Shown: positions 6,123-64,000 of the stretch, one piece after another
Layout: the number at the start of each line of letters is the position of its first letter
Numbering within the stretch: the first letter of the stretch is position 1
Virus record (IMG/VR): IMGVR_UViG_3300024502_000010
Location: 140,830 to 204,829 of that record
DNA length: 64,000 nt
Reading direction: 5' to 3' (one strand)
Translations under genes and position numbers: made by a program
The notes under the pieces: generated by a model
What the model saw: the letters and a program-made list of their open reading frames with translations, nothing else
Told to the model about the DNA's origin: nothing
Database searches by the model: none

Positions 6123-6933
6123 TGTTTTGCTGAGAAGTAGAATTTTCGGTTATTCTCCCCAGATATGGATCATAATCCATGTATTCTTCTATTTTAATTT
6201 TAGAACCATTTTGCTCCCAAAATTCGGAGAGTGCAGTGTGATTTCCTTTATGAAAAATATCAACATGTTCCGGATGAATAGATGATCCAAGTTCAATTCT
6301 ATAAAAGAGAAGAGGAATTGAATATGTATTTCCAGAATTATAAATCAAATCATCCGCAACTGGACGAGGTTTGACTCCATTATCCAGTTTATATTTTTCT
6401 CCACGGACATGGAACTTCAATAACTTTTCTGCATGATGTCTATTAATAAGATAGCAAGCTGTTGAAAAGTCATTAACAAATCTCTTATGCAATCTAACAT
6501 GCAAATCACCAGTACAAATGATTGCGATTTGAACTACATCCCAATCATATGGAATATGTGCATAAAAATCTGACCAATTAAAATCCCAGTATTTCACCAA
6601 ATCAAGATTACAATCATCTTCCATGATGATTGCATATGGACTATCTGAGGTTTCATACCAATGCTTTATTGCCTTAAGGTGAGATGTAATACATCCAATC
6701 TCACCCGATGTCATATTTTCAGGATAGCGACCTATTATAATATCACTTAAGTCATCTTCACGACCATCGTATGCAGAGATGCGTGTATAATTTTCAACTT
6801 CCCAATATTTAAATTGGGACTCCATATATTCTCTCCTTTCTTGCTGTCCATCAAGATTAAGATAATAAATGGGTCCAATATTTTTTAGTTTGTATGCTGA
6901 TTTATTCTTATCCAATTTATTAAAATCCATCAC
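6118..6933 (-). CDS. Glycosyltransferase family 25
   Basis: YYLNLD..ERR, ISAYDG, GEIGC..SH, IMEDD. Confidence 0.85.
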   Translation of the reverse strand: MMDFNKLDKNKSAYKLKNIGPIYYLNLDGQQERREYMESQFKYWEVENYTRISAYDGREDDLSDIIIGRYPENMTSGEIGCITSHLKAIKHWYETSDSPYAIIMEDDCNLDLVKYWDFNWSDFYAHIPYDWDVVQIAIICTGDLHVRLHKRFVNDFSTACYLINRHHAEKLLKFHVRGEKYKLDNGVKPRPVADDLIYNSGNTYSIPLLFYRIELGSSIHPEHVDIFHKGNHTALSEFWEQNGSKIKIEEYMDYDPYLGRITENSTSQQNT

Positions 6934-25283: not shown

Positions 25284-25336
25284 TGTTTTGAATGTTGACC
25301 TTAGTATTATAAGGGTTTGACAGGTAATCTGTCAAG

Positions 25337-25409
25337 TGCTCCTTGCGTGGATCGAACACGCCTCAGGCGAATTATGAGTTCGCTGCATTCACCAGATTGC
25401 TAAAGGAGC
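25337..25409 (-). tRNA. tRNA with CAU anticodon, probably Ile2 (lysidine type)
   Basis: Cloverleaf, loop CT-CAT-AA; C4-G69 and C5-G68 pairs are TilS determinants. Confidence 0.8.
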
Positions 25410-25413
25410 AAGG

Positions 25414-25501
25414 TACGAGTGGGTGGATTCGAACCACCTCAAAGCCGCTAATCTGGCGGAAAGAGTTTATAAGACTCCTCTGACTACCAAGTCTCACTCG
25501 C
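25414..25501 (-). tRNA. Atypical tRNA-Ile(UAU) with long variable arm
   Basis: Acceptor GCGAGTG/CACTCGT-A, 4-nt D loop, anticodon loop CT-TAT-AA, variable stem CCGC..GCGG, T arm GGTGG-TTCGAAT-CCACC. Confidence 0.65.
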
Positions 25502-25540
25502 TTAAATTCAGGTCTATTATAGAGGACCTGAAACTCTGTG

Positions 25541-25771
25541 TCAACAACCTTCTTCGTGGTCGGTATGTATTCGTATCACATCGTCGTCCACTTTAGATTC
25601 TACTGCAAACTTTATGGTTTCGTTGTATGGAACTATCACTGCGTTTCTTTCTCCGTCAGTAATGACAAATGATTCACCATTTTCTACTCTTTCTATTAGG
25701 TTGTCAAAATCTTCTTGAAACTCTTGAACTGTAAACTTTTGGAGATCTGAAAGTTCTGGATACATTTTCAT
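25541..25771 (-). CDS. Phd/YefM-like antitoxin-fold protein
   Basis: FTVQEFQEDFDNLIERVENGESFVITDGERNAVIVP matches the Phd N-terminal pattern. Confidence 0.6.
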   Translation of the reverse strand: MKMYPELSDLQKFTVQEFQEDFDNLIERVENGESFVITDGERNAVIVPYNETIKFAVESKVDDDVIRIHTDHEEGC

Positions 25772-25789
25772 AAAGTGAAGTTTTATGAG

Positions 25790-25865
25790 TCCGGATATTC
25801 AGATTTGAACTGAAATTATTCCTGCTCCCAAAGCAGGTGCCATGACCAAGTTAGGCGATATCCGG
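25790..25865 (-). tRNA. tRNA-Pro(UGG)
   Basis: Cloverleaf, CCTGC-TT-TGG-GA-GCAGG. Confidence 0.9.
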
Positions 25866-25978
25866 TTATTTGTTTTTATGTATAAACATAATACCAGCGA
25901 ATGGTACGATTGTCAACCCACATCCACAAAGAAAAAGAAAGAAAGGACTTGCTGCTAGGGTTTCAACCAAGTGGAAAA

Positions 25979-26206
25979 TCATCTTCCTCTCCAGTTCTTG
26001 TATTCATAATACATGTATTGGTCTGCTTCGTCAAGCCCCTGTAAAGGAGCTTGACAATCCCAATATGACCATTCAATACAGAACTGTTTAATATGTATAT
26101 CATTAGAAGCAGTTTTTACTCCATACATTCTTGAAAAGGCAGACATTGCAAACCAATATCTCTGCCTAATGTGCGGTTCCATTTCCCTTATAGTCTTTGG
26201 AGTCAT
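25979..26206 (-). CDS. Hypothetical protein
   Basis: ORF, start uncertain. Confidence 0.6.
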   Translation of the reverse strand: MTPKTIREMEPHIRQRYWFAMSAFSRMYGVKTASNDIHIKQFCIEWSYWDCQAPLQGLDEADQYMYYEYKNWRGR

Positions 26207-26274
26207 AGTATCCGCCTCTTGTTCCGAAATAGAGTGTAGATAATACAAATGGAATAGCAACAAAAATAAGTGCT

Positions 26275-27309
26275 TTACCTAACATGATGACCACCAAACA
26301 TATAACGCATTCCGTTCAGGATTTTTGCTCCAAATGATCCGAGATTGCGTGAGTTAAATCTTTCAAATAGTGCCGTAGTAATAACAGGAGCGGGAACCCC
26401 CAAGTCCACAGCGGCAGAAACAGTCCAACGACCCTCACCGCTATCGGATACTCCTCCAGAGAAGCGTTTAAGGCTACCATCCCTGCGTAGCACATCAGCA
26501 GTAAGATCGAGTAACCAACTACCAACCACGCTACCGCGACGCCATAACTCAGCCACCTCAGCAACATCAATGTCGTAACAATAACTTTCTGGGTCTGCCA
26601 TAGGAGCAACTTCAGCATCTCCTTCTTTGACATACTGTGCTCCGTTATTTGCGTTCTTTAAGATATTAAATCCTTCAGCATATGCCTGCATCATTCCATA
26701 TTCAATTCCATTGTGAACCATCTTCACAAAATGTCCAGCACCAGGACCACCACAATGTAACCAACCAAACTCAGCAGAAGTTACATCCGAGTCATACTGA
26801 GTCCTGGGGGCAGCGTTGATTCCTGGGGCAAGGGCATCAAAAATCCTCGCACAAGTGGCGACCGCAGTATTTCCGCCACCAACCATAAGACAGTATCCAC
26901 GATCCAAACCATAAACACCGCCGCTAGTACCACAATCAATATATTGGATACCAAGTTTTGCCAGACGCTCTGCTCTTTTCCGACTGTCTTTAAAATTGCT
27001 ATTGCCATGATCAATAATAATATCTCCTTCACCACAATATCGTAGTAACTCATTGATCGTTTCCTCTACTGTTTCGGATGGAACAACCATTTGAAAAATA
27101 CCTGGTTGTTGTCTACCGTTTTTATTTTGTTTAACTACTTTAACAAGGCTTTCAATATCAGTCGTAATTCCATTAACAAATCCCTTTTCAAAAGCTTCGT
27201 TTGCTTTCTCATAATTTCTTCTATATCCCCAAACCTCTATACCCGATTTCATCATGCGGCGAGACATACCTTCGCCCATTCTTCCTAAACCGATTAATCC
27301 TACTTTCAT
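26275..27309 (-). CDS. gnd: 6-phosphogluconate dehydrogenase (short form)
   Basis: GLIGLGRMG, DHGNS, DCGTSGG, GHFVKMVHNGIEYG, DSGEGRW. Confidence 0.97.
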   Translation of the reverse strand: MKVGLIGLGRMGEGMSRRMMKSGIEVWGYRRNYEKANEAFEKGFVNGITTDIESLVKVVKQNKNGRQQPGIFQMVVPSETVEETINELLRYCGEGDIIIDHGNSNFKDSRKRAERLAKLGIQYIDCGTSGGVYGLDRGYCLMVGGGNTAVATCARIFDALAPGINAAPRTQYDSDVTSAEFGWLHCGGPGAGHFVKMVHNGIEYGMMQAYAEGFNILKNANNGAQYVKEGDAEVAPMADPESYCYDIDVAEVAELWRRGSVVGSWLLDLTADVLRRDGSLKRFSGGVSDSGEGRWTVSAAVDLGVPAPVITTALFERFNSRNLGSFGAKILNGMRYMFGGHHVR

Positions 27310-27401
27310 AAAACCTCTGGATATGCGTGCGTAAGTCCCCAATATATAAAAAGTCCAATTGAACCAAACAAAGTCATTGAAGTGAATATTAACCTAATCA
27401 T
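27306..27401 (-). CDS. 31 aa single-TM microprotein
   Basis: MIRLIFTSMTLFGSIGLFIYWGLTHAYPEVL; ATGA overlap with gnd. Confidence 0.55.
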   Translation of the reverse strand: MIRLIFTSMTLFGSIGLFIYWGLTHAYPEVL

Positions 27402-27684
27402 CTTCTTCGTCCTCATAGGTAGATGGTTCTTCAAAGAGTTCATCCATTTTTTGTTGTATAATTCTTTGTTGCAGTTCTTGCAAGTCTTCTTCGGTGAATT
27501 TAACCACTAGTAAAGGATCTCCTGCTTTAACGTCGTTTAATTCTGGATGTTTTACTTTTGGACTTTTAGAATACCCATGATGAGCATTCATAATCATCCA
27601 ACCCTGCACGAACATTGTAAGTGCAATCACCACAAGAACAAACCAAGGAACCAAGAAAATCAGTTCAGAGTGATTTTGAGCCAT
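27394..27684 (-). CDS. DUF2973-like membrane protein
   Basis: N-terminal TM helix then HPEL...LLVVKF. Confidence 0.7.
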   Translation of the reverse strand: MAQNHSELIFLVPWFVLVVIALTMFVQGWMIMNAHHGYSKSPKVKHPELNDVKAGDPLLVVKFTEEDLQELQQRIIQQKMDELFEEPSTYEDEEDD

Positions 27685-27863
27685 GGAAGCAACGGAGGAA
27701 TTACCCCTACAAGTCTCAAAAGTCCTTCAGCAAATAAAGCAAGAACCACCCAACCGACGCACATACTAATGATAGAAGCATTACGGTTGTGTCGTCGTAT
27801 TGCTGCATCGATCATCTCCTGAACTTCAGAACGTGTAATAAATTCGTCTTGTTCGTGCATCAT
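27660..27863 (-). CDS. Small membrane protein
   Basis: IDAAIRRHNRNASIIS + TM helix. Confidence 0.7.
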   Translation of the reverse strand: MMHEQDEFITRSEVQEMIDAAIRRHNRNASIISMCVGWVVLALFAEGLLRLVGVIPPLLPWLKITLN

Positions 27864-28009
27864 TTCTCGTCTCCAAGAAACTTTGCGAGAGGATCTTTTC
27901 GGGTTTTTAAAATCTCACATGCTCGATAATAAAACATATTATTAGTGTTGCCAGAGGCTTCAAAAGTTGCCTTGATCTTCACCCAATTATCATAGGTGTG
28001 CTGATCCAT
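27860..28009 (-). CDS. 49 aa hypothetical protein
   Basis: MDQHTYDNWVKIKATFEASGNTNNMFYYRACEILKTRKDPLAKFLGDEK; stop overlaps next start. Confidence 0.65.
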   Translation of the reverse strand: MDQHTYDNWVKIKATFEASGNTNNMFYYRACEILKTRKDPLAKFLGDEK

Positions 28010-28123
28010 AGGTTTGTCCCTGTGATACTATTATATACTAATCACAGACATTTCAAAGTCAATTTTTTGTGTTCATATCGTAACACTGTTGAAGAAAATA
28101 TTAAATTTGTAACTTAACTTAAA

Positions 28124-28209
28124 ACGGAAAGGGTGGGATTCGAACCCACGGATGCTTTCACATCGCTAGTTTTCAAGACTAGAGCCTTCAACCACTCGAC
28201 CACCTTTCC
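28124..28209 (-). tRNA. tRNA-Ser(UGA)
   Basis: Class II cloverleaf, CTAGT-CT-TGA-AA-ACTAG. Confidence 0.93.
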
Positions 28210-28219
28210 AGTGGGAGGT

Positions 28220-28471
28220 TCAACGAACCTCAAAATCCAAACGCTTTACTTTGCGTTGGCGTCTTGCCTCTTGCCAGGCAATATCTTGTGAAGTCAGAAC
28301 ATTTGATTTTTGTTCTTTCTGAATAGAGTTTAACATAACAATACGAGATAAGTCAAGTGCTGAAATCTTATCTCCACGAATTGTTGCCATATTAGGACAA
28401 CCACAGGTCACTGTTTTTGAATGATGTCCTGTTATTTCTCTATTACAATCTTTGCATCTTATTGAAATCAT
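28220..28471 (-). CDS. Small Zn-ribbon hypothetical protein
   Basis: CKDC...CGC. Confidence 0.7.
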   Translation of the reverse strand: MISIRCKDCNREITGHHSKTVTCGCPNMATIRGDKISALDLSRIVMLNSIQKEQKSNVLTSQDIAWQEARRQRKVKRLDFEVR

Positions 28472-28486
28472 TATTCTTCATCCTAA

Positions 28487-28921
28487 TCATTGCAGGTGTG
28501 CTCTCAACTGCCAAACAAACTTACCATGAGATTCCATCAAATCTTGAACTAAATTTGCTGTAGCATATGACTTTTGATTTTCAGACTCTTCCGAAATTTC
28601 TCCCATCAATTCACAAAACTTGGTATTGTTATCAAGAAGTTCTTGAAGCATTTCTTTTGCTCCGGTTGAACTTGCTGCCTCTTTGATTTGAGTTACCTCA
28701 AGCATTCTTGAGAGAGAACTGAGAGGTTTTACATTCAGATAACGCATATGTTCTGAGAGACGATCAATCTCTTCAAACATAGTCTCATACTGACCACCAA
28801 AGAGTTGATGTAGTTGAGTGAAATCTTCACCTACAACATTCCAGTGAAATGCCCAAGTTTTATGGAATAAAACAAAAAGCGATGACTGTGCATCACTCAA
28901 GAGTTTATAAAGTTTTTCCAT
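28487..28921 (-). CDS. dps: Dps family ferritin-like protein
   Basis: HWNVVG..F..LHQLF..QY...IDRLSEHMR; late-type CATAAATA upstream. Confidence 0.92.
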   Translation of the reverse strand: MEKLYKLLSDAQSSLFVLFHKTWAFHWNVVGEDFTQLHQLFGGQYETMFEEIDRLSEHMRYLNVKPLSSLSRMLEVTQIKEAASSTGAKEMLQELLDNNTKFCELMGEISEESENQKSYATANLVQDLMESHGKFVWQLRAHLQ

Positions 28922-28949
28922 TATACTCTTTTTGAAATATTTATGCAAA

Positions 28950-28966
28950 TGGGAGCAGAGGGATTC
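28950..28966 (-). pseudogene. Remnant 3' end of a tRNA
   Basis: GAAT-CCCTC-TGCTCCC-A = end of T loop, T stem 3' strand, acceptor 3' strand, discriminator; no 5' half found. Confidence 0.5.
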
Positions 28967-28972
28967 ATTTTT

Positions 28973-29509
28973 TTACTTATTCATACAAAACTTAGGATGT
29001 TGCTTGTCCTTACTGTAACGTCCACCGTTACTCTTTTGGGGTGGTAAAGTTTTTTGTGCGTGGCAGTTGGGACAGACCACTTGTAGATTTTCAGGGGCGT
29101 GGTTGAAAGGGTCGTCGTCTATGTGGTCCACCTCAAGGCAGGTTCGTCCGGTATGAATGTTTGTTCCAGACCAACCACAAAGGGAACACTTACCCCCACT
29201 CGCTTCTAATAAGTAAGCACGAACACCGCTGGGAACATAACCCTGCCCTGTATGGTTCAGTTCTCCTACTTTCCACTTATCTATTGTCCATTGTCTCTTG
29301 GCTGCAGCACTACACTTGTTAGAACAGAACTTGCCAGTAGAACTCTTTTTCTTATAGTCAAACTCTACACTGCAGTAATTACAGATGGCGGTGTCCCAAC
29401 CAGTTCTTTTCCTCTTAGGAGACTTCTTATTATTATAGGTTACAGAACACGAACGGGAGCAGAACTTAGGTTTATCGTTCTCACACCCGCAGTTTAAACA
29501 AGTAGTCAT
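28973..29509 (-). mobile_element. HNH homing endonuclease in tRNA array
   Basis: CxxC/FCSxxC Zn motifs, LEVDHIDDDPFNHAPENLQVVCPNCH; late promoter in hairpin. Confidence 0.85.
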
Positions 29510-29563
29510 AATAGAACCGAATACCTTTTATTATTTATAACACAAGTATTCGTTTTAGTAAAG

Positions 29564-29635
29564 TGCCCGAAGAGGGACTTGAACCCCCAACATTTTCGGT
29601 GTAAACGAAACGCTCTGCCTTTGAGCTATTCGGGC
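29564..29635 (-). tRNA. tRNA-Val(UAC)
   Basis: TTTCG-TT-TAC-AC-CGAAA. Confidence 0.9.
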
Positions 29636-29638
29636 AAG

Positions 29639-29711
29639 CTCCCATCGTAGGTACTGCCCCTACCAATCTCTGATTAACAGTCAGGCCCGTTCGCTTGCTC
29701 GGTCGATGGGA
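29639..29711 (-). tRNA. tRNA-Asn(GUU), atypical T loop
   Basis: Acceptor TCCCATC/GATGGGA-G, loop CT-GTT-AA, T loop GGCAGTA. Confidence 0.75.
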
Positions 29712-29715
29712 ATAA

Positions 29716-29785
29716 AGGAAGTTACTGGACTTACACCAGTTCAAAGGGCATTGTCTGCTTGTCTCGATTCTTTGACTTAACTTCC
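29716..29785 (-). ncRNA. tRNA-like RNA lacking a canonical anticodon arm
   Basis: Perfect acceptor GGAAGTT/AACTTCC, D arm GTC/GAC, T arm ACTGG-TGTAAGT-CCAGT, but only GCA-GACAA-TGC as anticodon arm. Confidence 0.55.
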
Positions 29786-29825
29786 TTTGGCGTCTTTCTA
29801 TGCTATCTGCATAACGACTACCAAG

Positions 29826-29897
29826 AGCGAAAGACGAGATTCGAACTCGCAACAACCTGCTTGGAAGGCAGGGACTCTACCGTTGAGTTACTTTCGC
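29826..29897 (-). tRNA. tRNA-Gly(UCC)
   Basis: CCTGC-CT-TCC-AA-GCAGG, U discriminator. Confidence 0.93.
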
Positions 29898-29936
29898 AAT
29901 GAGACAATCATAAACTATTTAAGTTTGATTGTCAAG

Positions 29937-30019
29937 TGCTCCAGAGAAGATTTGAACTTCCACGCTTTTTAAGGCGGCGGATTCTAAGTCCGCTGTGTCT
30001 ACCGTTCCACCACTGAAGC
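29937..30019 (-). tRNA. tRNA-Leu(UAG)
   Basis: GCGGA-CT-TAG-AA-TCCGC, long variable arm. Confidence 0.93.
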
Positions 30020-30102
30020 AGATGGAGTAAGCGTAATATACCTCATAAGGATATAACAGAGGCTTACCCTCTATCACTTTTATGTATGGAGATAAACTCC
30101 AA

Positions 30103-30175
30103 CAGGCACAGAGGGACTCGAACCCCCAATCGTCATCTTAGAAGGATGTTGCATTATCCATTATGCTATGTGCCC
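30103..30175 (-). tRNA. tRNA-Arg(UCU)
   Basis: Loop CT-TCT-AA. Confidence 0.92.
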
Positions 30176-30180
30176 ATAAA

Positions 30181-30245
30181 GTAGGTTCCTATCGCCGCCA
30201 TTCCTGAACCTACCGAAGGGGAATGCCGCAGTTGATTTCTCAACT
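30181..30245 (-). ncRNA. Leader RNA: GNRA hairpin plus H-type pseudoknot
   Basis: AGTTGA-GAAA-TCAACT; S1 CATTCC/GGAATG, S2 GTAGGTTC/GAACCTAC; TTGACC-17-TACAAT promoter at 30251-30279. Confidence 0.5.
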
Positions 30246-30280
30246 CTTATATTGTACCAGTTGTTTGGAAACTGGTCAAG

Positions 30281-30352
30281 TGGGAAATGGTGGATTTGAA
30301 CCACCGACCTCTGCGTTATCAGCACATTGCTCTACCACTGAGCTAATCTCCC
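30281..30352 (-). tRNA. tRNA-Ile(GAU)
   Basis: Loop CT-GAT-AA. Confidence 0.92.
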
Positions 30353-30355
30353 TGG

Positions 30356-30444
30356 CGGAAGTGGTTGGATTCGAACCAACGGATGCACTTAGGTACATCG
30401 GCGGATTAGCAATCCACTGCATTAGACCTCTCTGCCACACTTCC
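30356..30444 (-). tRNA. tRNA-Ser(GCU)
   Basis: Loop TT-GCT-AA, long variable arm. Confidence 0.92.
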
Positions 30445-30446
30445 AA

Positions 30447-30518
30447 TAGTCCCTACGGGAATCGAACCCGTGTCTACACCGTGAAAGGGTGGTGTCCTAA
30501 CCGCTAGACGAAGGGACC
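30447..30518 (-). tRNA. tRNA-Glu(UUC)
   Basis: Loop CT-TTC-AC. Confidence 0.9.
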
Positions 30519-30521
30519 AGG

Positions 30522-30603
30522 TGGGCAGGGAGGGATTTGAACCCCCGTAGGCAGAGCCAGCGGATTTACAGTCCGCCTCCATTAACCACTCGGACACCTA
30601 CCC
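30522..30603 (-). tRNA. tRNA-Tyr(GUA)
   Basis: GCGGA-CT-GTA-AA-TCCGC, variable arm. Confidence 0.93.
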
Positions 30604-30613
30604 GACTTTTCTA

Positions 30614-31018
30614 TTATATAGGTTCTTTGGGGCAACTGTCAACCCATGGAGCGCATAGTCTCATCTCCCCACCAAGTAATCGTTGAGCCTCAGAGTTATC
30701 TGGAGCTTTCTCAATCAACCTGGGCAAAGGTACTCTAGGTGGATCTGAGTCTCTTGTCAAGTCCTCATAATCACGAATTGCTTTATCCACATCACGCTCA
30801 ACTCTCCTACCAACCACAGCAGGGTCCTGAAGCAGCACATCGTTGATTACGGTGCCTGGGAACAGAGATCTCTGAACCTCGTCTAGAAGGTCCCAGAGGC
30901 GCTCCTGAGGCGCTCCTGTGCATTGGGAGAGGGTTGCTACGATACCACTGAGTATGACGCTTATAAGGATTATCTGCTTCTTATCAGGTTTCTTCTTTCC
31001 GAAGTTAAAATTGAACAT
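30614..31018 (-). CDS. Hypothetical protein with N-terminal TM/signal segment
   Basis: 134 aa ORF. Confidence 0.7.
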   Translation of the reverse strand: MFNFNFGKKKPDKKQIILISVILSGIVATLSQCTGAPQERLWDLLDEVQRSLFPGTVINDVLLQDPAVVGRRVERDVDKAIRDYEDLTRDSDPPRVPLPRLIEKAPDNSEAQRLLGGEMRLCAPWVDSCPKEPI

Positions 31019-31054
31019 AAAAAAAGAGGAGTAGCAACCGCTCTCCTCTATTTA

Positions 31055-32257
31055 TTATTTTTGTCTAGCTCTTTGAAGGGCTCTCATAAGAGCACCAGAT
31101 CTAGTCGTTGATTTTTCAGTATTACTAGAATTTTTTTCACGATTTTCTCTACTTGGAATTACTCTCCTATTATCAGAAGAATCACCCGGATGAATTGCTT
31201 GAAATCTTGATTTTGTTGTTTCACTTCTTCTATTTGGTTGTGCTTGAATATGATCTACATCATGCTTTTGCCCTGTTTCCTGAGACTTACTTTTTGCCTC
31301 ATCTCTTTGAGACTTTTTCCTTCCCCTTTCAATTCTTAATGCTCTATTCGCATTTTTTTTACAATCACCCGGATGCAAATTTCTTTTACAATGATCTTCC
31401 AACTCTTTATGACTAATCGCTTTTAGATTTTCTTTTCTCCTTTCATCTTGGTCTTTTCTTTTTTCTTTGGATTCTAGTCCCCAATATGGAGTTTCTGCAG
31501 TTTGTCTATTTTTTAATCTATAAGCATTTGGATTTTCTTGTGATTGTCGAATTTTCTCAGCATCTTCTCTAGAACGGATTCTAGTATATTTTCTTGCTTC
31601 TAAAATAATATAACACTCATATATAAACTCACTAAAAGTTTTTCCATTAAAGGAATCACTCAACTTCGCCATCTGAACACCAGTCTTGGGATTTCTTTCT
31701 CCCATTCCTAGTTTCTTATAAATTCTACCTCTTTGTTCTGCACCTTCCTCACCACTTCTACTCTTTTTACCCTTAGACTTAGCAGAATCAATAGCAGTAG
31801 GAGTATTTGTAGCAACTCCTTTCTTTGACTTCATAGTATCTTTTACGCCTTTGAGAGCACCAACAAATTGTCTTGCTCTTTGTCCGGGATCTTTTACTTT
31901 AGATTTTGGAGAACCAACAGTGATATCATGAACTGGAGAATCTTTCTTAGCACCAGTTTTACCAAACTGTTTTTTTAATTCTTTACTCTGTGGCTTATCA
32001 CCCTCTCTATGTTGCTTTCTTGCAGTATGAGCAGCATAATCTCCAGGAGACTTATGAGTTCTTACCCAAACAGGAACATCTTTTCCACTCTTTTCTACTT
32101 TTGGATCTTGAATGGGACCTTTTTTCCTAAACCCCGCACGAGAAACATCTTTTCTCGCGGCACCTTCTGATCCACGCATATTCATAGTTCCGGAAGGTCT
32201 AACTTTTTTCCCTACCATCAAAGTCCTTTCATCAAGGATTTCTTCTTGAAACTGCAT
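31055..32257 (-). CDS. Basic putative virion-internal protein with C-terminal HNH-like domain
   Basis: Late promoter CATAAATA; internal KTFSEFIYE; HDVDHIQAQ...SSDNRRVIPSRENREKN. Confidence 0.65.
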   Translation of the reverse strand: MQFQEEILDERTLMVGKKVRPSGTMNMRGSEGAARKDVSRAGFRKKGPIQDPKVEKSGKDVPVWVRTHKSPGDYAAHTARKQHREGDKPQSKELKKQFGKTGAKKDSPVHDITVGSPKSKVKDPGQRARQFVGALKGVKDTMKSKKGVATNTPTAIDSAKSKGKKSRSGEEGAEQRGRIYKKLGMGERNPKTGVQMAKLSDSFNGKTFSEFIYECYIILEARKYTRIRSREDAEKIRQSQENPNAYRLKNRQTAETPYWGLESKEKRKDQDERRKENLKAISHKELEDHCKRNLHPGDCKKNANRALRIERGRKKSQRDEAKSKSQETGQKHDVDHIQAQPNRRSETTKSRFQAIHPGDSSDNRRVIPSRENREKNSSNTEKSTTRSGALMRALQRARQK

Positions 32258-32272
32258 CTTTATAAGTACTTT

Positions 32273-32932
32273 TTAGGTATTTATGAAAACTCTACCATAC
32301 CAAAAACCACTTGGAACTTCATCAATAGAGTTTATGTATTTGTTTTCATTTCCATTTGTAATCCACTTTTTACCATAACAAGGATTTTTCTCACCAAGTT
32401 TTGCCTCAATATGTTTTCTTTTTGTTTCTGGATTTTGATGAGATTTGAGTGCTGCCTGTCTATGGTTCTCAACTACTTCTGGACGATTGTGTGCTTTCTT
32501 TCCAACTCTACTTTTTAGTTTTCTCATTTCTGGATTACTCAAAGTTCTAATCAAGTTTTTTCTTGCTTTCTCTTTGAGTTTTGGATTACTCATAGGATTG
32601 TATTCTGTTTTCATCAACTCACTTCTTTTCTTGTTTGCTTCTTCACCAGCACCTTTATTACAATAAAATCCAGTAGAAGTTTGTTTTGCCCTATTAGCAA
32701 AGTGTGGATTTTTATCTACTTCATAAAAATCGTGGAGAGCACATTCTGCTTCAAGTGCTTCTTCAACACTCCCAAAAGTTTCTAATATTATTTTTTGAGT
32801 TGGATTGAAAGTTTTATCTTTGAAACTTCCAAAATAACTTACATCTTCTTCTGGAAGACATTTACATTCTCTTTTTCCAATATAACCTCTTCCATATTCC
32901 TCATAGGAATAATACACATAAAAGTGTTTCAT
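32273..32932 (-). mobile_element. GIY-YIG (Seg-like) homing endonuclease
   Basis: FYVYYS...GRGYIG.R, E...H, N.A; basic NUMOD-like tail. Confidence 0.85.
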
Positions 32933-33029: not shown

Positions 33030-33683
33030 TTAGACATCAGCAAGAACCAATCGTTTAGCATAGTCATAAGCATATTGTGTTCTTGCTCCATGGTGTCCCC
33101 ATCCAATCCATTCGTAGGCATAATTCATATACCTATCAATAGATTTTCCAGAAACTTTCATTCTGTTTTCAATACTCTTCCATTGTGGTTCAGTAGTAAT
33201 ATACCGAAGTTGAGTATCAGCAGTAGAAGGATTACCTCCTATTTTTTTAGCAAAAGCACCCAGTCCATAATAACGAGAAGCAGAAGTAAATTGTATCAAA
33301 CCATAACCTCTTCCACAATTATAGTATGAGGTTCTACTACCACCTTCACAAATGTTAGGCACGAATGTTGATTCCTGTCTAATATTGCCCATGATGGTAG
33401 CAAGGGCGTTTCTGTCTCTAATACCACGATCCTGGAAAAATGCCAGGGTAGCATTCTCATGTTCATTACACCCTTTACAAATTAGTCTTTTCTCTTTTGG
33501 CTTTGGTGGTGCAACCTCTAGGATTGCTGTCTTCTCGGGTTCAAACTCTTTAATAATAGAATAAGGTTTTTCATCCACTGGGGGAGGAGGACCTTGCAGT
33601 TTATAACTAGAGAAAGGCAGTGATGCCGTATTGGTTGTAACCATTGCTAAAAGAGGAACGGCTACAGTAAAGAAGTTTAGCAT
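33030..33683 (-). CDS. Phage lysozyme-like cell-wall hydrolase (Phage_lysozyme2-like)
   Basis: ATIMGNIRQES, GYGLIQFT, DTQLRYI; N-terminal signal-like segment. Confidence 0.75.
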   Translation of the reverse strand: MLNFFTVAVPLLAMVTTNTASLPFSSYKLQGPPPPVDEKPYSIIKEFEPEKTAILEVAPPKPKEKRLICKGCNEHENATLAFFQDRGIRDRNALATIMGNIRQESTFVPNICEGGSRTSYYNCGRGYGLIQFTSASRYYGLGAFAKKIGGNPSTADTQLRYITTEPQWKSIENRMKVSGKSIDRYMNYAYEWIGWGHHGARTQYAYDYAKRLVLADV

Positions 33684-33837
33684 TAAAATTAATTGAACTC
33701 TACATCCGTATAGAAAGGGGGTACACCCTTTTCTCAAAGGGCACTTTCCACGGCTCTAATTGTCACTCAAAGTCTCATTACAAGAAAACCCACCTTATGG
33801 TGGGTTATAAACATTATAAGTTTTTATTTAGAATCTG

Positions 33838-43991: not shown

Positions 43992-45293
43992 TTAAAAAGT
44001 ACTTGCTTTTTTTGCTTTATACTTATTTATGAAATTGATACCATAAGCCTTGCCACCCTTCTGCAAATATTGTTTATTAGTTCCCACTGCACCGGGAGTT
44101 TTTGATGCATAATGCTTAAATGCCCCCAATGTACCAACAAGAGTATTTGGATGCTTTTCGTCTCTCATTGGACTATCCATTTGAACTTCGGTATATTCCA
44201 TCACATCTTTAATCCAAGACTTAAACATATAACCCTCTTCAGTCACACAGATTAAATGATTGGTTCCCCTACGCATTACTTCACCAATCAAACCAGTATT
44301 AAGGTTTTGAACTTTATCACCGATTCTGAAAATTTTACCTCTCACATAATTCTCACGAAGATTTCTCATATCATACTTTGGAGCAATCTCCCATAAAGCA
44401 AAACTTTCCTTTTTGATTGCTGACTTTTTAACACCCATTCCCTGACGAACAGCATTGAATAAACCTTGAGTTTCTGCATCATCAAGAGACTTTGGAGTGC
44501 CTCTTCTAAAAGATTTAAAATCGCCATCAATAACTGCCTTTCTCATCTTCGATGCCGACATTCCCTCAACACCCTCAGCATCAGCATCACGAACACCAGC
44601 AGAGATTACCCTAATTTGATCAAAGGTATAAAGTTCTCCATTATACTTTTGTGCCAGATTTTCAAACTCTGCTTGCCTATCTGAACCAACAACAATATTG
44701 ACATTAGTATACCCGTCTTCATTAGCGGTAATGAGAACATTAAAAATTGTCTTCATTTCCTTATCATTAATAATGTTCTCCTCGAACTCAGGGAACATTT
44801 TCTTCATATAAGAAACTTTACTATCAGGGTCTAAAGGATTCTTCTTTGGATCTTGAGACCTTGAAGGATAAATCTTAATATCTCCACCGGCAGAAATTCT
44901 CTTTGCTGACTTGAGAAGTTTTTCGTGCCCCACTGTTGGTGGATTGAAGCGACCAAATACAACAGTGAGTGGTGGAAGTTCTTCTGCAGGTTGCTCTTCG
45001 GGTTCTTGTCCTGGTGCTGCTTGAGGTTGTGGTGCAGGTTCTTGTGCTGTAGCGATTGGTTGAGGAGATGGTGCTTGTGCTGCTTGAGGTGCTTGTGTCT
45101 CTGGTTGTTTTGCACCTTTTGCTTGGCGACCATCAATATATTTAAGTTTCCCCTTCTCCGTTCTCGCAATGACTTTACCGGAACGGTCAATCCATCCACC
45201 ATGACCATCACCAACCAATCCAAGTTTTTTCGCTTGCATCGCTGCTTGCGATTGTGTTGCCTCAGACAAAAACTGAAAGAAATTTTTCATCAA
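43992..45293 (-). CDS. Cytidylyltransferase-superfamily nucleotidyltransferase (NadM-like)
   Basis: VVFGRFNPPTVGH, VVGSDR, SASKMR; N-terminus MKNFFQFLSE. Confidence 0.8.
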   Translation of the reverse strand: MMKNFFQFLSEATQSQAAMQAKKLGLVGDGHGGWIDRSGKVIARTEKGKLKYIDGRQAKGAKQPETQAPQAAQAPSPQPIATAQEPAPQPQAAPGQEPEEQPAEELPPLTVVFGRFNPPTVGHEKLLKSAKRISAGGDIKIYPSRSQDPKKNPLDPDSKVSYMKKMFPEFEENIINDKEMKTIFNVLITANEDGYTNVNIVVGSDRQAEFENLAQKYNGELYTFDQIRVISAGVRDADAEGVEGMSASKMRKAVIDGDFKSFRRGTPKSLDDAETQGLFNAVRQGMGVKKSAIKKESFALWEIAPKYDMRNLRENYVRGKIFRIGDKVQNLNTGLIGEVMRRGTNHLICVTEEGYMFKSWIKDVMEYTEVQMDSPMRDEKHPNTLVGTLGAFKHYASKTPGAVGTNKQYLQKGGKAYGINFINKYKAKKASTF

Positions 45294-46057: not shown

Positions 46058-46129
46058 TGGAGTGTAAGGAAATCGAATCCTTATTGCTGGAATGCAAATC
46101 CAGAGTAATAACCGTTATACGAACACCCC
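46058..46129 (-). tRNA. tRNA-Ala(UGC)
   Basis: Loop TT-TGC-AT; G3-U70 wobble; TTGACT-17-TATAAT promoter upstream. Confidence 0.85.
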
Positions 46130-49424: not shown

Positions 49425-50418
49425 AACTGAATTCCTTGCGTGCGATTTCGTCCAACTGTTGCATTACTTCTTCGGTGAAATATACTTCAGGTTCTTTTAG
49501 AATCTGTTTAGCATAAATTTTCTTACCATCAATCTCATAGCGACCCGCTACATTCTTCCAGAGTCCACCAATCTCACCAAGTTCCAAAAGACCATAGTAA
49601 CGATCAAGACCGCGCTCATCATAATACAGACGGACTTCAACATCTTTGTTCTCCTTACTCAAACGCGACTTAGCAGTCTTAGCTTTGATAATATTGCCGA
49701 CCACTTCTGTTCCATCCTTTTCTTTCTTTTTGCTGAGATAAATGATTGAAGACGCTGCGTATTTGAGTCCGCTGCCTCCACCCATTTCTTTAGTTGGTAC
49801 GTAAGCTCCGATAACATCATAAGTGTGATTTGTTACTATCATTGGAATTTTTGCTTGACCTAGTTTTAAGGTAAGCATACGAAATGCACCTTTGATTAGT
49901 TGTGATTTAGTCATATCACGAACTTCTTTATCATTCAATGCATCATTAATCTCTTTGCTGGTAGAAAGCATTCCCAAAGAGTCTAGCACAAACATGCAAG
50001 GATTGCGCTCTCCTTCAGGTTTTTTCATGTACATATCTACTGCTTTGAGTGCCGTTCCACGAAACTCTTCAACAGTGACAACATTAACAACCACAAGACG
50101 AGAAGTATCAATTCCACGGGATTCTAGAAGAGATTTAGTTATAGCAGCTTCAGTATCAAAGTAGAGGCAATAACCATCGGGATTATTATCCAAAAAATTC
50201 TTAACAACGGCGAGACTGAAGAAAGTCTTTCCAGTAGAAGACTCTCCAGCAATAGCAGTAATCTTATTGCCAGATACACCACCAAATATGCTACCTGAAA
50301 CCAGTGCATTAAAAATGTACGAACCTGTGTCAACATACTTTTCAGTTTCATCAATATCCGAAGCAAGTTGTGTGTACTCACCACCGATTTCTTTTACAAT
50401 GTCTTTAAGAAAATCCAT
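49411..50418 (-). CDS. uvsX: RecA-like recombinase
   Basis: [27 protein letters not shown]. Confidence 0.96.
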
Positions 50419-61740: not shown

Positions 61741-61909
61741 TCTTGAGTTCTTTGAGATACTCTTCGCTGGCAATATGTCCAGTATATCCTGGATAGTATT
61801 TATTAACTAAAGAAGGAATACCAATAGCAGTTGTGCTGCTATTGCATTTAATCCATACTTCTTTAGTATCATATTTTACTACATGTTCAAATGGAAATTT
61901 AGTTTTCAT
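61724..61909 (-). CDS. Hypothetical protein
   Basis: 61 aa ORF. Confidence 0.65.
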   Translation of the reverse strand: MKTKFPFEHVVKYDTKEVWIKCNSSTTAIGIPSLVNKYYPGYTGHIASEEYLKELKNQLEN

Positions 61910-62619
61910 TTTTTATTTCGTTCTTCTTGTTTACGCTTTGCAAATTGCATATAAGTTTCACCTGGTTTTAGGCGATTACTATAATCTTGTTTTGTTTGTG
62001 CAGATGTATTTTGACCTCTGTTTTCTCGAGCTCTCATCTTGTTGCCAGCGCCACTAATAGCAGCATCTTTTTTGGGATCTGGATGCCACCAGTCACCCGC
62101 CTCACTCATATTCTGTTCATAAGTAAATGTCTTGTTTTTAACTTTAGTATCAAACTCACCAGTTCTACCTGGATTCATTTTACCGACTTTAACACGCTTA
62201 CCCTCTCCTGGCCAAGACTTATTAGTTCCCACCAGTTGAGCAGAACCCTTTGGTTTTTTTTGAATTAAGACAGAATCTTGATTATATTTTTTACCAAGTT
62301 TAGTGATTGCTTTTTTGAACTTTTTCTTACCCATTTTACCAGAAGAAACTACATGTGATTTCTCACCTACTTTTTTTTCTTGAGGAGTTCCTGGGTTTTC
62401 AGTATATCTACCAGATACCTTAGTAGGTCCTGGAAGACCAGCACCTCTAATATCTTTCTCCAATTGTTTTGAACGCGCTTTATTTTCTTTCTTTGATTTA
62501 TCGCCTCTTTGGGCAGACATAATTGCCATACCACCTTTTTCTGATTTTGAGCGAACTCTATTCAAAGATGTTTCTTGAATAGAGTAACACTCTACCACAA
62601 ATTCTTGGAATGTTTTCAT
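61906..62619 (-). CDS. Basic protein with T4-type capsid targeting sequence
   Basis: N-terminus MKTFQEFVVE versus T4 IP CTS MKTYQEFIAE. Confidence 0.7.
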   Translation of the reverse strand: MKTFQEFVVECYSIQETSLNRVRSKSEKGGMAIMSAQRGDKSKKENKARSKQLEKDIRGAGLPGPTKVSGRYTENPGTPQEKKVGEKSHVVSSGKMGKKKFKKAITKLGKKYNQDSVLIQKKPKGSAQLVGTNKSWPGEGKRVKVGKMNPGRTGEFDTKVKNKTFTYEQNMSEAGDWWHPDPKKDAAISGAGNKMRARENRGQNTSAQTKQDYSNRLKPGETYMQFAKRKQEERNKK

Positions 62620-64000
62620 GCTACCAAAGAAATAAATTCTCCTAATACTTTTTTATTTAGTTTTTTAGTCTTCAAAGATTTCACAAAAGCAGATTTGATT
62701 TGAGATTTGGTTGCATCTTCAGCAATTTCAAATTCAGTATCTTGAGAAAGTGCGGTTGCAGACATTCCAAAGTATGCATCATATCCAGAGTTAGTAATAG
62801 TGAAACTCTTCAGTTTTTTCCAATCACTCAGGATTTTATCATACACCTTACCATCATTGATAGAGTGATAAAGACCAATAAACCGACTTGCATTGCGACT
62901 TTCAAGAACACGAATACCAATAAAGTTTGTATTAGAAAACTTATCTTTCAAGTTCCTGAGAAGAGCATCAGTAAACTCATGATAACCATATCCAATCTTA
63001 TAGGTAGTTCCAAGTTTGCGGTCACGCAGGAAGGTTAGTTCTGGATTAATATATCCAGTTCCAAGAAATGGTTTCTTTTCCCACTGGCGTTTGACTTCTT
63101 TGTGATAAACAAGTTGATTTGCCTCACCATCAGTCAAAACAATACACTGCACCTTCTGAAGTTTATTTTCTTTTTGAAACTTAGGAAGAATTTGGTTAAG
63201 AGTAATCAGTGCCTCATTTAGAGGAGTTCCAGAAAGACAAAGACGACTCGGATAGGTATAAGAAGAACTATAAGTCCTACCAAAACAATAAGCAAGACGC
63301 CAAATGTTGAGCATTTGATTCTCAAGAACTTTACCAGAAACTTTACTAGTAAGAATGTTCATCATCGAGAAAGTTTCATCTACAACCAGAAGACCATCTT
63401 TCTTTTGATAATGTGGAGTACGGTCTGCAGCGAGATAACGATCATTCTCATAATCATACTCACCGCGACGCCACTCACTAGTAAAAGCATAAACCTCAAA
63501 AGGAATGGAAACTTTCTTACAAAACCAAACAATGTTAAAGAGTTGTTTACAAGTATCAAGCATCACATCGCACATAGAACCACTCCAGTCCAACACAAAT
63601 ACCAGACCATGATTTTTGCCATCAGGAATCACAGATACTTTCTTGAACAAGTCTTCATTGTACTTGTAAGTATGAAGACGAGTTGTATCGAGAATACCAG
63701 TGCGAGCAGTTGATGCACGAGCATACTGGTCTGCTGCCTTACGGCACTCAAATTCTTTTACAAGGTAATTGACTTCTTTTTGGGCAGAAGACTTGAACTT
63801 CTTGAACTCAGTATCAGATTCTTTATAAAGATTTACTGGAGTATATCCCTTTTCTTGTGCGTGTTCATTATGAATTTTTTGTTGATGAGCAAAAGAATCA
63901 TCAATATCTTTATGAACTTCAGAGTTCTTACCAATAACAGTATCAAGATTTACTTGAGGAACCTCAATATAAACATTTTCATATCCATCGTTACCCACAA
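62616..64000 (-). CDS. vWA-domain protein, partner of the AAA+ ATPase (5' end outside window)
   Basis: VFVLDWSGSM MIDAS, GTP, LTDGE. Confidence 0.85.
   Translation of the reverse strand, partial: VGNDGYENVYIEVPQVNLDTVIGKNSEVHKDIDDSFAHQQKIHNEHAQEKGYTPVNLYKESDTEFKKFKSSAQKEVNYLVKEFECRKAADQYARASTARTGILDTTRLHTYKYNEDLFKKVSVIPDGKNHGLVFVLDWSGSMCDVMLDTCKQLFNIVWFCKKVSIPFEVYAFTSEWRRGEYDYENDRYLAADRTPHYQKKDGLLVVDETFSMMNILTSKVSGKVLENQMLNIWRLAYCFGRTYSSSYTYPSRLCLSGTPLNEALITLNQILPKFQKENKLQKVQCIVLTDGEANQLVYHKEVKRQWEKKPFLGTGYINPELTFLRDRKLGTTYKIGYGYHEFTDALLRNLKDKFSNTNFIGIRVLESRNASRFIGLYHSINDGKVYDKILSDWKKLKSFTITNSGYDAYFGMSATALSQDTEFEIAEDATKSQIKSAFVKSLKTKKLNKKVLGEFISLVA

Follow-up and report, generated by a model that had tools for sequence, protein, structure and literature searches.

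Within the 64,000 nucleotides of viral DNA analysed here (positions 140,830 to 204,829 of IMG/VR record IMGVR_UViG_3300024502_000010; hereafter the window), an uninterrupted open reading frame (ORF) of 400 amino acids runs from 31055 to 32257 on the minus strand. There is strong support that its product, P0001, is a fusion of two units that each carry a capsid targeting sequence (CTS), the tag that reads MKTYQEFIAE in T4. The balance of the evidence somewhat favours the reading that P0001 is a two-unit precursor of internal (ejected) head proteins, which would be packaged, cut and injected and which include an HNH-like second unit. The architecture of the gene, its homologies, the placement and depletion of protease motifs, the limits of the cassettes and the protease in a contig with the identical gene are seen in the sequence data; the steps that we infer are packaging, cleavage, injection and catalysis. 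The source virus is a T4-like cyanomyovirus, with neighbouring genes that match those of the Synechococcus phages S-SRM01 and S-PM2. The protein is basic throughout (pI 10.2 overall, with 97 Lys and Arg residues, and pI 10.4 for each half), and scans of its whole length against Pfam and PHROG gave no match. All sequence features on which the original prediction was built, i.e. a late promoter, an N-terminal EEILDE, a basic domain, an internal KTFSEFIYE segment and a C-terminal HNH-like motif, were found in place. The parts of the protein are the following.

32228..32257, minus strand: propeptide at the N-terminus, MQFQEEILDE (residues 1-10), which is a CTS of degenerate form ending in L-D-E, with a predicted prohead-protease site after Glu10.
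31643..32227, minus strand: core of the N-terminal unit (N-unit, residues 11-205), basic, about 22 kDa, pI 10.4, with the invariant motifs GSEG.AR.DV.RAGFR, VHDITVG.PK and SDEEGAEQRGRIY.
31598..31642, minus strand: joint with the internal CTS, KTFSEFIYECYIILE (residues 206-220), which contains I-Y-E up to Glu214 and I-L-E up to Glu220; the boundary of cassette exchange.
31058..31597, minus strand: whole C-terminal unit (C-unit, residues 221-400), the predicted mature second product, about 21 kDa, pI 10.4.
31403..31597, minus strand: first sub-domain of the C-unit (residues 221-285), ARKYTRIRSREDAEKIRQ..NP..YRLKN..P.WGL, with a predicted local distance difference test score (pLDDT) of about 85-93 in the AlphaFold2 (AF2) model.
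31124..31264, minus strand: HNH-like (His-Me finger) core (residues 332-378), HDVDH336 ... IHPGD ... DN363RRVIPSREN372REKNS.

The proposed fusion of two CTS-tagged units is strongly supported by several comparative observations: the halves occur separately elsewhere, protease motifs stand at the tag ends, the lineage encodes a gp21-type protease, and cassettes are swapped at the tag. The second unit is found mainly in proteins in which it stands alone. With residues 223-400 as query at least 74 homologues were retrieved at E<=0.01 from a collection of 5.8 billion proteins, and most of these are stand-alone proteins of about 180-190 residues. Moreover, 55 stand-alone relatives begin with MK[TS][FY], the majority of them going on with ..F[IL].E (e.g. 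MKTFREFILEARK) in a form like MKTF(R/Q)EFI(L/I)E, and the protein P0009 begins with MKTYQEFIIE, which is the same as the T4 tag at nine of the ten positions. Positions 1-14 of the 'internal head protein' family phrog_2667 match residues 1-14 in 18 of the 61 members of the family alignment (E about 0.04), matches that are weak because they are so short. As the stand-alone relatives start with a CTS, KTFSEFIYECYIILE is no chance resemblance: it is the tag with which the second unit would begin, kept within the fusion. Together with the ARK that follows, it spans residues 206-223. This 16-residue form of the tag is not an artefact of the junction, because another protein of the window (61906-62619) begins with MKTFQEFVVECYSIQE; the two align over 17 columns (hhalign E 7e-5). 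The residue that precedes KTF in the fusions with the N-unit is G, K, R or Y and never M, and with no ATG ahead of KTF the second unit must be made solely as part of the fusion.

The first 65 or so residues of the mature second unit are common to other tagged modules, as seen in hhalign comparisons of the C-unit alignment (A1, 61 sequences) with residues 206-424 of P0079 (E 2e-17) and with L067 (E 6e-11). The modules that share this sub-domain bear other C-terminal halves with an HH(I/L)TP...NL motif, one of them with a very weak HNH_2 match (E 0.19). Three related proteins (P0008, P0040 and P0083) have an extra leader of about 72 residues, with the hydrophobic stretch ANAVLALSFAANAAQSP, ahead of the tag and are therefore three-part precursors.

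The first unit is far less common. A tblastn search of 50,697 deposited phage genomes with P0001 yielded a single match, in Synechococcus phage DSL-LC02 (Kyanoviridae), the closest deposited relative for this gene, and none to the C-unit. The DSL-LC02 protein of 208 residues is 64% identical over residues 8-222 of P0001, after which a stop follows, so that it ends in ...ITFNEFMSMIYE*. When 1.84 billion representatives (clustered at 50% identity) were searched exhaustively with HMMER, the N-unit was recovered in only 10 clusters, and no Pfam, PHROG or PDB match to it was found. It occurs without a downstream module in three cases (DSL-LC02, P0086 and P0087). The N-terminal EEILDE of the original prediction is present and retains the L-x-E end, and the tag to which it belongs is of a degenerate form, MQFQEEILDE, in which positions 4 and 7 are not aromatic. 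It is the same as the family form MKTFEEFLDE at six of ten positions; other members begin with the canonical MKTFEEFLDE, MKTFQEFLEE or MKTFSQFISECYELEE, and the N-terminus in the lineage of the window reads M[QDY]F[QE]EE[IL]LDE. Residues L8, E10 and R11 are invariant across the 12 N-unit proteins of alignment A3. In every N-unit protein seen the canonical KTF.EF occurs once or more, either at the N-terminus or behind the core or at both places, although these proteins represent few independent lineages. An ESM lead (score 0.84) that would make the N-unit a distant S-adenosylmethionine (SAM) lyase was dropped: its likeness to the SAM-lyase-like protein of the window is confined to the tag, and the Pfam search was empty.

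The distribution of protease motifs points in the same direction. In T4, gp21 cleaves after L/I-X-E, and within the tag targeting depends on positions 4 and 7 and processing on positions 8 and 10. P0001 contains [LI].E three times in all, with the Glu at residues 10, 214 and 220, i.e. at both tag ends; the mean across the proteins of the window is 1.23 per 100 residues. The motif is found at the tag end in 51 of the 55 stand-alone C-unit proteins, and their mature bodies hold one copy where 66.8 were expected from shuffled sequences. These 55 sequences are kin, diverging to about 45% identity, and do not amount to 55 independent observations. The depletion is specific for the motif: the ratios of observed to expected in the same bodies were 1.12 for [LI].D, 0.93 for E.[LI] and 1.32 for [LI]..E. 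Such a loss would be hard to explain unless these proteins are exposed to a gp21-type protease. The cores of nine N-unit proteins are not depleted (5 observed versus 4.9 expected). A 284-kb IMG/VR contig (G001, IMGVR_UViG_3300027541_000009) that encodes an identical 400-residue protein also encodes a Peptidase_S77 (gp21; E 1.6e-34), and the genes that flank the latter we read, without a family-model search, as portal and gp22-like scaffold. Neither gp21 nor gp23 nor any part of the head module was found in the record of the window itself, which is 78% complete. In G001 a 27-nucleotide pattern match at 6310 recurs at 216007, 209,697 bases away, which makes it probable that the assembly represents a genome of some 210 kb plus a long terminal redundancy. 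The two records differ in places, and no match to the SAM-lyase tag sequence of the window was seen in G001.

Modularity is seen when the gene is compared with its relatives. Relative to locus L012 the gene is 95-100% identical at the DNA level over nucleotides 1-660 (N-unit and joint) and 93-100% identical after the stop, whereas identity over nucleotides 661-1200 is 62-78%, a range that in a global alignment denotes essentially unrelated sequence. L010 and L019 show the same profile; over the first unit the relatives are 90-100% identical in DNA. Thus, the second unit is a cassette that is bounded by the internal tag and the end of the gene. Among the representative clusters and the IMG/VR loci the N-unit is joined via a (G/K)KTF.EF...E joint to at least six unrelated modules. 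One such fusion (P0081) has a domain of the SAM lyase family (PF23780, E 3.9e-17) behind the N-unit and joint.

The HNH-like character of the second unit is supported by a number of concordant lines of evidence, each of which stays below threshold; together they lend moderate support to an HNH-like fold. The C-terminal motif of P0001, HDVDHIQAQP...IHPGDSSDNRRVIPSRENREKNS (residues 332-378), corresponds to the family motif (H/Y)(D/N)V(D/G)HI.(P/A)Q ... DNR.V.....N(R/L).K(N/G)S. It resembles the Cas9/HNH_4 pattern, DVDHIVPQ...DNKVL.....NR.KS. Invariant in alignment A1 are H131, Q135, R146, H151-P-G-D154, N158, R159 and N167; adding 205 converts these to P0001 numbering and so gives H336, N363 and N372. 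The spacing from N363 to N372 is 9, and the position of D335 is usually Asp, with Gly in a few members. The AF2 model of the C-unit (mb6f2c99085e2; mean pLDDT 85, predicted template modelling (pTM) score 0.70) has a strand at 332-336 that ends at His336, a strand at 364-368 directly after Asn363 and a helix at 369-375 that contains Asn372. Two Pfam families were matched on the DH motif, each by 3 of the 61 members: GmrSD_C (best E 0.0023, 18.2 bits, cut-off 23) and HNH_4 (best E 0.01, 16.2 bits, cut-off 22). A Foldseek search of BFVD returned 9 HNH annotations among the 12 top matches, the best at E 0.009 (probability 0.92) and E 0.016 (probability 0.98), with the top HNH matches ranging over E 0.009-0.04 and probability 0.69-0.98. 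Among 28 weak rows in the PDB, 9 are HNH domains (Cas9, Cap5), all at E >=3.8. As leads only, the closest named ESM Atlas clusters are all HNH (scores 0.80-0.82); a fold neighbour at a template modelling (TM) score of 0.38 carries PF01844 in 24% of its members. An hhalign comparison of the C-unit profile with the canonical phage HNH proteins of the window and of DSL-LC02, both single-sequence templates, was not significant. Taken together, we consider it quite likely that the second unit has an HNH-type fold, and the chances that it is an active nuclease may be about even.

Several observations weigh against a packaged, HNH-like two-unit precursor, and they are best considered with the explanations that they favour. 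Given that each half is a separate gene in other phages and that in DSL-LC02 a stop follows directly after the joint-like peptide, the ORF might be an accidental or assembly-derived fusion of adjacent genes, from which a stop and a start have been lost and which has no function as a polyprotein. This is very improbable in view of the exact recurrence of the protein, which is found on 37 contigs from several sources and at 99-100% identity at six IMG/VR loci; the contigs of four independent RNA libraries are identical and free of indels. Furthermore, the frame stays open through the joint in at least seven divergent lineages, which differ in the module that follows and have G, K, R or Y in place of M before KTF. 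It is also rather improbable that MKTF.EFI.E is no head-entry signal and that P0001 is an ordinary cytoplasmic late protein, such as a packaging-assisting HNH or a homing enzyme, in which the likeness to the T4 CTS reflects a common amphipathic N-terminal helix. In its favour, terminase-associated and homing HNH proteins are common in phages, two homing-type endonucleases lie nearby (GIY-YIG/NUMOD3 at 32273-32932 and HNH at 28973-29509), and the tagged cytidyltransferase of the window described below has another three [LI].E motifs beyond its tag. However, the peptide is common to unrelated proteins and always ends in (L/I)-x-E, it approaches the T4 tag to nine of ten positions in P0009, and the profiles of internal head proteins match N-terminus to N-terminus. 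The near-total and motif-specific depletion of [LI].E in the mature bodies likewise speaks against this explanation. As regards homing, no NUMOD, AP2 or similar DNA-binding modules were detected in P0001, and its HNH-like unit, which lacks a start codon, invariably continues the reading frame of the joint, in a family in which the tag is N-terminal and cleavable.

A further explanation, which we hold to be unlikely although well short of negligible, accepts packaging and processing and denies the catalysis: the second unit would be a DNA-binding or charge-neutralising protein, or an inhibitor of host defence, and the HNH-like motif a structural relic. In fact, every HNH match is sub-threshold. 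None of the 61 members matches a curated HNH family above the cut-off and the sequence of the window itself gave no hit; neither Foldseek nor VIA-align, in a wide search and in a second look, produced a significant PDB match; neither the C-unit nor its HNH part, nor for that matter the N-unit, gave a useful hit when searched as a profile against the PDB, one chance CXXC match (E 0.17) aside; and the HNH sub-domain folded by itself reached a pLDDT of 65 and a pTM of 0.26, so that this model was not used. Moreover, both units are very basic, as the T4 internal proteins are, and the T4 internal proteins of known function are all inhibitors and include no enzymes. An inert protein would pose no danger to the packaged genome, and the best Pfam match is to the nuclease domain of GmrSD itself, which is compatible with a mimic or decoy. 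On the other side, 61 sequences with identities down to 44% all retain H336, N363 and N372 although nearby positions vary, and related cassettes have the different HNH-type motif HH(I/L)TP...NL at the equivalent place. Together these suggest selection for an active site rather than for a surface. The HNH-like domain that was predicted originally is thus moderately supported by the invariant H/N/N, their spacing, the beta-beta-alpha model and the BFVD and Pfam leads, and falls short of curated thresholds and of a significant PDB match. The same division applies to the structural comparison that had been proposed as a check, in which the AF2 topology and the BFVD matches agreed with an HNH fold and the PDB search and the sub-domain folded in isolation did not.

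When we return to the two-unit precursor as the preferred reading, the following course of events can be envisaged. The gene would be transcribed late, and the precursor would be drawn into the scaffolding core of the prohead via the canonical internal KTFSEFIYECYIILE and the degenerate MQFQEEILDE. A gp21-type prohead protease would then cut after Glu10 and after Glu214 and/or Glu220, and so set free two basic proteins of about 21-23 kDa that would stay with the DNA and enter the host alongside it. The first would be the conserved basic protein. The second would combine the conserved N-terminal sub-domain with a diverged H-N-N (Cas9/HNH_4-like) His-Me finger core, and it would most likely be a nuclease or nickase that depends on metal and acts as soon as infection begins. 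In addition, the internal tag is the recombination boundary at which relatives swap the second unit for other cargo, including a SAM lyase.

Two putative signals for expression flank the coding sequence.

32278..32285, minus strand: late-promoter-like CATAAATA, a motif match only, 20 nucleotides 5' of the ATG and inside the 3' end of the GIY-YIG gene.
31019..31049, minus strand: terminator-like hairpin with U7, directly 3' of the TAA stop (31055-31057).

The former agrees with the T4 late promoter TATAAATA at seven of eight positions. On the minus (coding) strand of the window 23 copies of its ATAAATA core were counted and on the plus strand a single one, where about 21 were expected for both strands summed; the bias in strand fits a genuine late-promoter element. 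No sigma-70-like promoter was found in the region. The hairpin has a predicted RNA folding energy of -15.7 kcal/mol (z -4.3), with none of 200 shuffled sequences equally stable, and was missed by a consensus terminator scanner because its stem is bulged. The stretch of the window was recovered from six riverine metatranscriptome libraries, the contigs of four of which are identical to the window without indels; since DNA may occur in such libraries, these contigs show presence and not transcription. Adjoining contigs of one RNA run differ about six-fold in depth, with the break at 32288-32317, and one RNA-library contig has an alternative junction at 32288.

The tag is not restricted to P0001 and its kin. 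The 237-residue basic protein that begins with MKTFQEFVVECYSIQE (61906-62619, minus strand) has an S-AdoMet_lyase domain (PF23780, E 3.9e-18), and its sole [LI].E motif is the tag end. It has a second, degenerate joint, KNKTFTYEQNMSE (residues 163-175 approximately), followed by a C-terminal module that matches other PHROGs. It is a candidate for a head-packaged SAM lyase, from a family of anti-restriction enzymes. An upstream ORF of 460 residues (62616-63998) ends in a stop that overlaps this gene. Also tag-like is the N-terminus of a 432-residue cytidyltransferase (43995-45290, minus strand; phrog_395, E 1e-102), which begins with the looser form MKNFFQFLSE; its homologue in a sister contig (L026:1498-2697) begins with MKSFRQFISE. 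Both are aromatic at positions 4 and 7 and have the L/I-x-E end. Packaging is less clear for this enzyme because its body retains the three further [LI].E motifs. The start of UvsX (at 50418 in the window) also fitted a loose tag pattern and was set aside as a chance match.

A scan of IMG/VR for ATG-K-T-(F/Y)-x-E-F-I-x-E uncovered at least 132 tagged ORFs in at least 60 cargo clusters, from at least 120 stretches (L030-L149). Among the matches listed are SAM-lyase-like proteins (at least 18 ORFs), ART-PolyVal (E 1e-23), a DPBB_1 lytic-transglycosylase-like domain and DUF6267, and most cargo clusters listed are without known function; several of the contigs listed have two or three tagged genes in tandem, as the T-even phages do. 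From these data one could tentatively generalize, at a confidence that falls slightly short of even, that T4-like phages from the environment, among them cyanomyoviruses, possess a cassette system for proteins that are delivered as infection begins. One universal tag, 10-16 residues long, would then serve as head-entry signal, cleavable linker and recombination site at once, unrelated enzymes would be strung into polyproteins and swapped, and an internal or even a C-terminal tag would be enough for packaging. The range of cargo in such a system could, with the same reserve, comprise an HNH-like nuclease, a SAM lyase, an ADP-ribosyltransferase, a cytidyltransferase and dozens of proteins of unknown function.

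The surroundings of the gene can be summarized briefly. The record of the window is a viral contig of 204,829 bases, and the runs in which the stretch occurs come from riverine metagenomes. The gene is flanked by the GIY-YIG/NUMOD3 endonuclease ORF (minus strand), which lies directly upstream and appears to be a mobile insertion, and by a small conserved ORF (30614-31018). In the relatives L010, L012 and L019 the sequence within the P0001 gene is 90-100% identical and that 5' of the ATG is unrelated to the window. A cluster of tRNA genes adjoins the P0001 gene: 12 of the 13 tRNA genes of the window lie at 25336-30603, and the remaining one (Ala) is at 46058-46129. The canonical HNH endonuclease at 28973-29509 (minus strand; PF01844, E 4.6e-5) is located inside this cluster. 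A Phage_lysozyme2 protein with a hydrophobic N-terminus is encoded at 33030-33737 (minus strand; E 9.7e-15). Its DSL-LC02 homologue is labelled 'virion structural protein', and the order of this gene relative to the N-unit gene is not the same in the two phages.

If the proposed reading is correct, the head-entry tag and the protease logic of T4 would be conserved from coliphages to freshwater cyanophages. It would moreover provide a sequence rule for the recognition of proteins that are co-injected with the DNA, i.e. an MKTF.EFI.E tag combined with a mature body without (L/I)-x-E. Such proteins are the first to act in counter-defence and in the takeover of the host. A polyprotein with an internal tag would constitute a new route to the co-delivery of effectors in a fixed ratio, and a tag that works away from the N-terminus would be useful in T4-based protein-delivery vectors. 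A naturally packaged HNH-type enzyme would also pose the question how the phage tolerates a nuclease beside its own genome.

The closest known counterpart is formed by the internal proteins of T4, all three of which are inhibitors of GmrSD-type restriction enzymes, and whose genes are shuffled at the conserved tag sequence among the T-even phages. P0001 and its relatives share with IPI, IPII, IPIII and Alt the near-identical tag MKTF/Y.EFI.E with its gp21 L/I-X-E end. They also share with the internal proteins the small and very basic cargo, putative late expression (predicted here from motifs), the use of one tag on unrelated cargo, the exchange of hypervariable cargo genes at the tag, and a lineage with a gp21-type protease and a putative gp22-like scaffold. 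Unlike those proteins, P0001 stems from a Kyanoviridae-type virus of a cyanobacterial host and has two units in one polypeptide, with the canonical tag internal and without a start codon and the N-terminal tag degenerate. Its cargo families, known here from sequence alone, are unrelated to the internal proteins, the N-unit being without known relatives and the second unit HNH-like. No description of a capsid targeting sequence in cyanophages was found in the literature, a weak absence as most subscription journals lie outside the coverage of that search.

The second unit itself resembles HNH_4 (Cas9/McrA-like) and GmrSD_C in D-x-D-H-I-x-P-Q, in the Asn...Asn spacing of 9 followed by N-R-x-K-N/S and in the predicted beta-beta-alpha arrangement. 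It differs from them by an insertion of about 13 residues between the strands, with the invariant H-P-G-D, by the lack of a zinc-binding CxxC pair and by scores below every curated cut-off. The T3-type SAM lyase family (PF23780), found as alternative cargo in the P0081 fusion and in the stand-alone CTS-tagged gene at 61906-62619, is not homologous to the second unit of P0001. The SAM lyase of T3 is made early from the injected DNA and is not known to be carried in the head.

There is also a parallel with the polyvalent proteins, in which conflict-related modules are likewise combined in one polypeptide that is delivered with the DNA, cut, and shuffled between relatives, and with which the related CTS-tagged cargo has ART-PolyVal in common (Iyer et al. 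2017, PMC5512222). Polyvalent proteins are large, with 2-15 domains, and typically have their own MPTase-type peptidase (PMC5512222). P0001 differs in that it has two units, that no peptidase or any other Pfam domain was detected in it (no peptidase domain was found in its fusion relatives either, nor any other Pfam domain beyond the swapped cargo), and that cutting is predicted to be carried out by the head-maturation protease at tag-like linkers. P0001 is therefore best described as a variant of the T4 internal-protein system, namely a tag-delimited cyanophage polyprotein with new cargo families.

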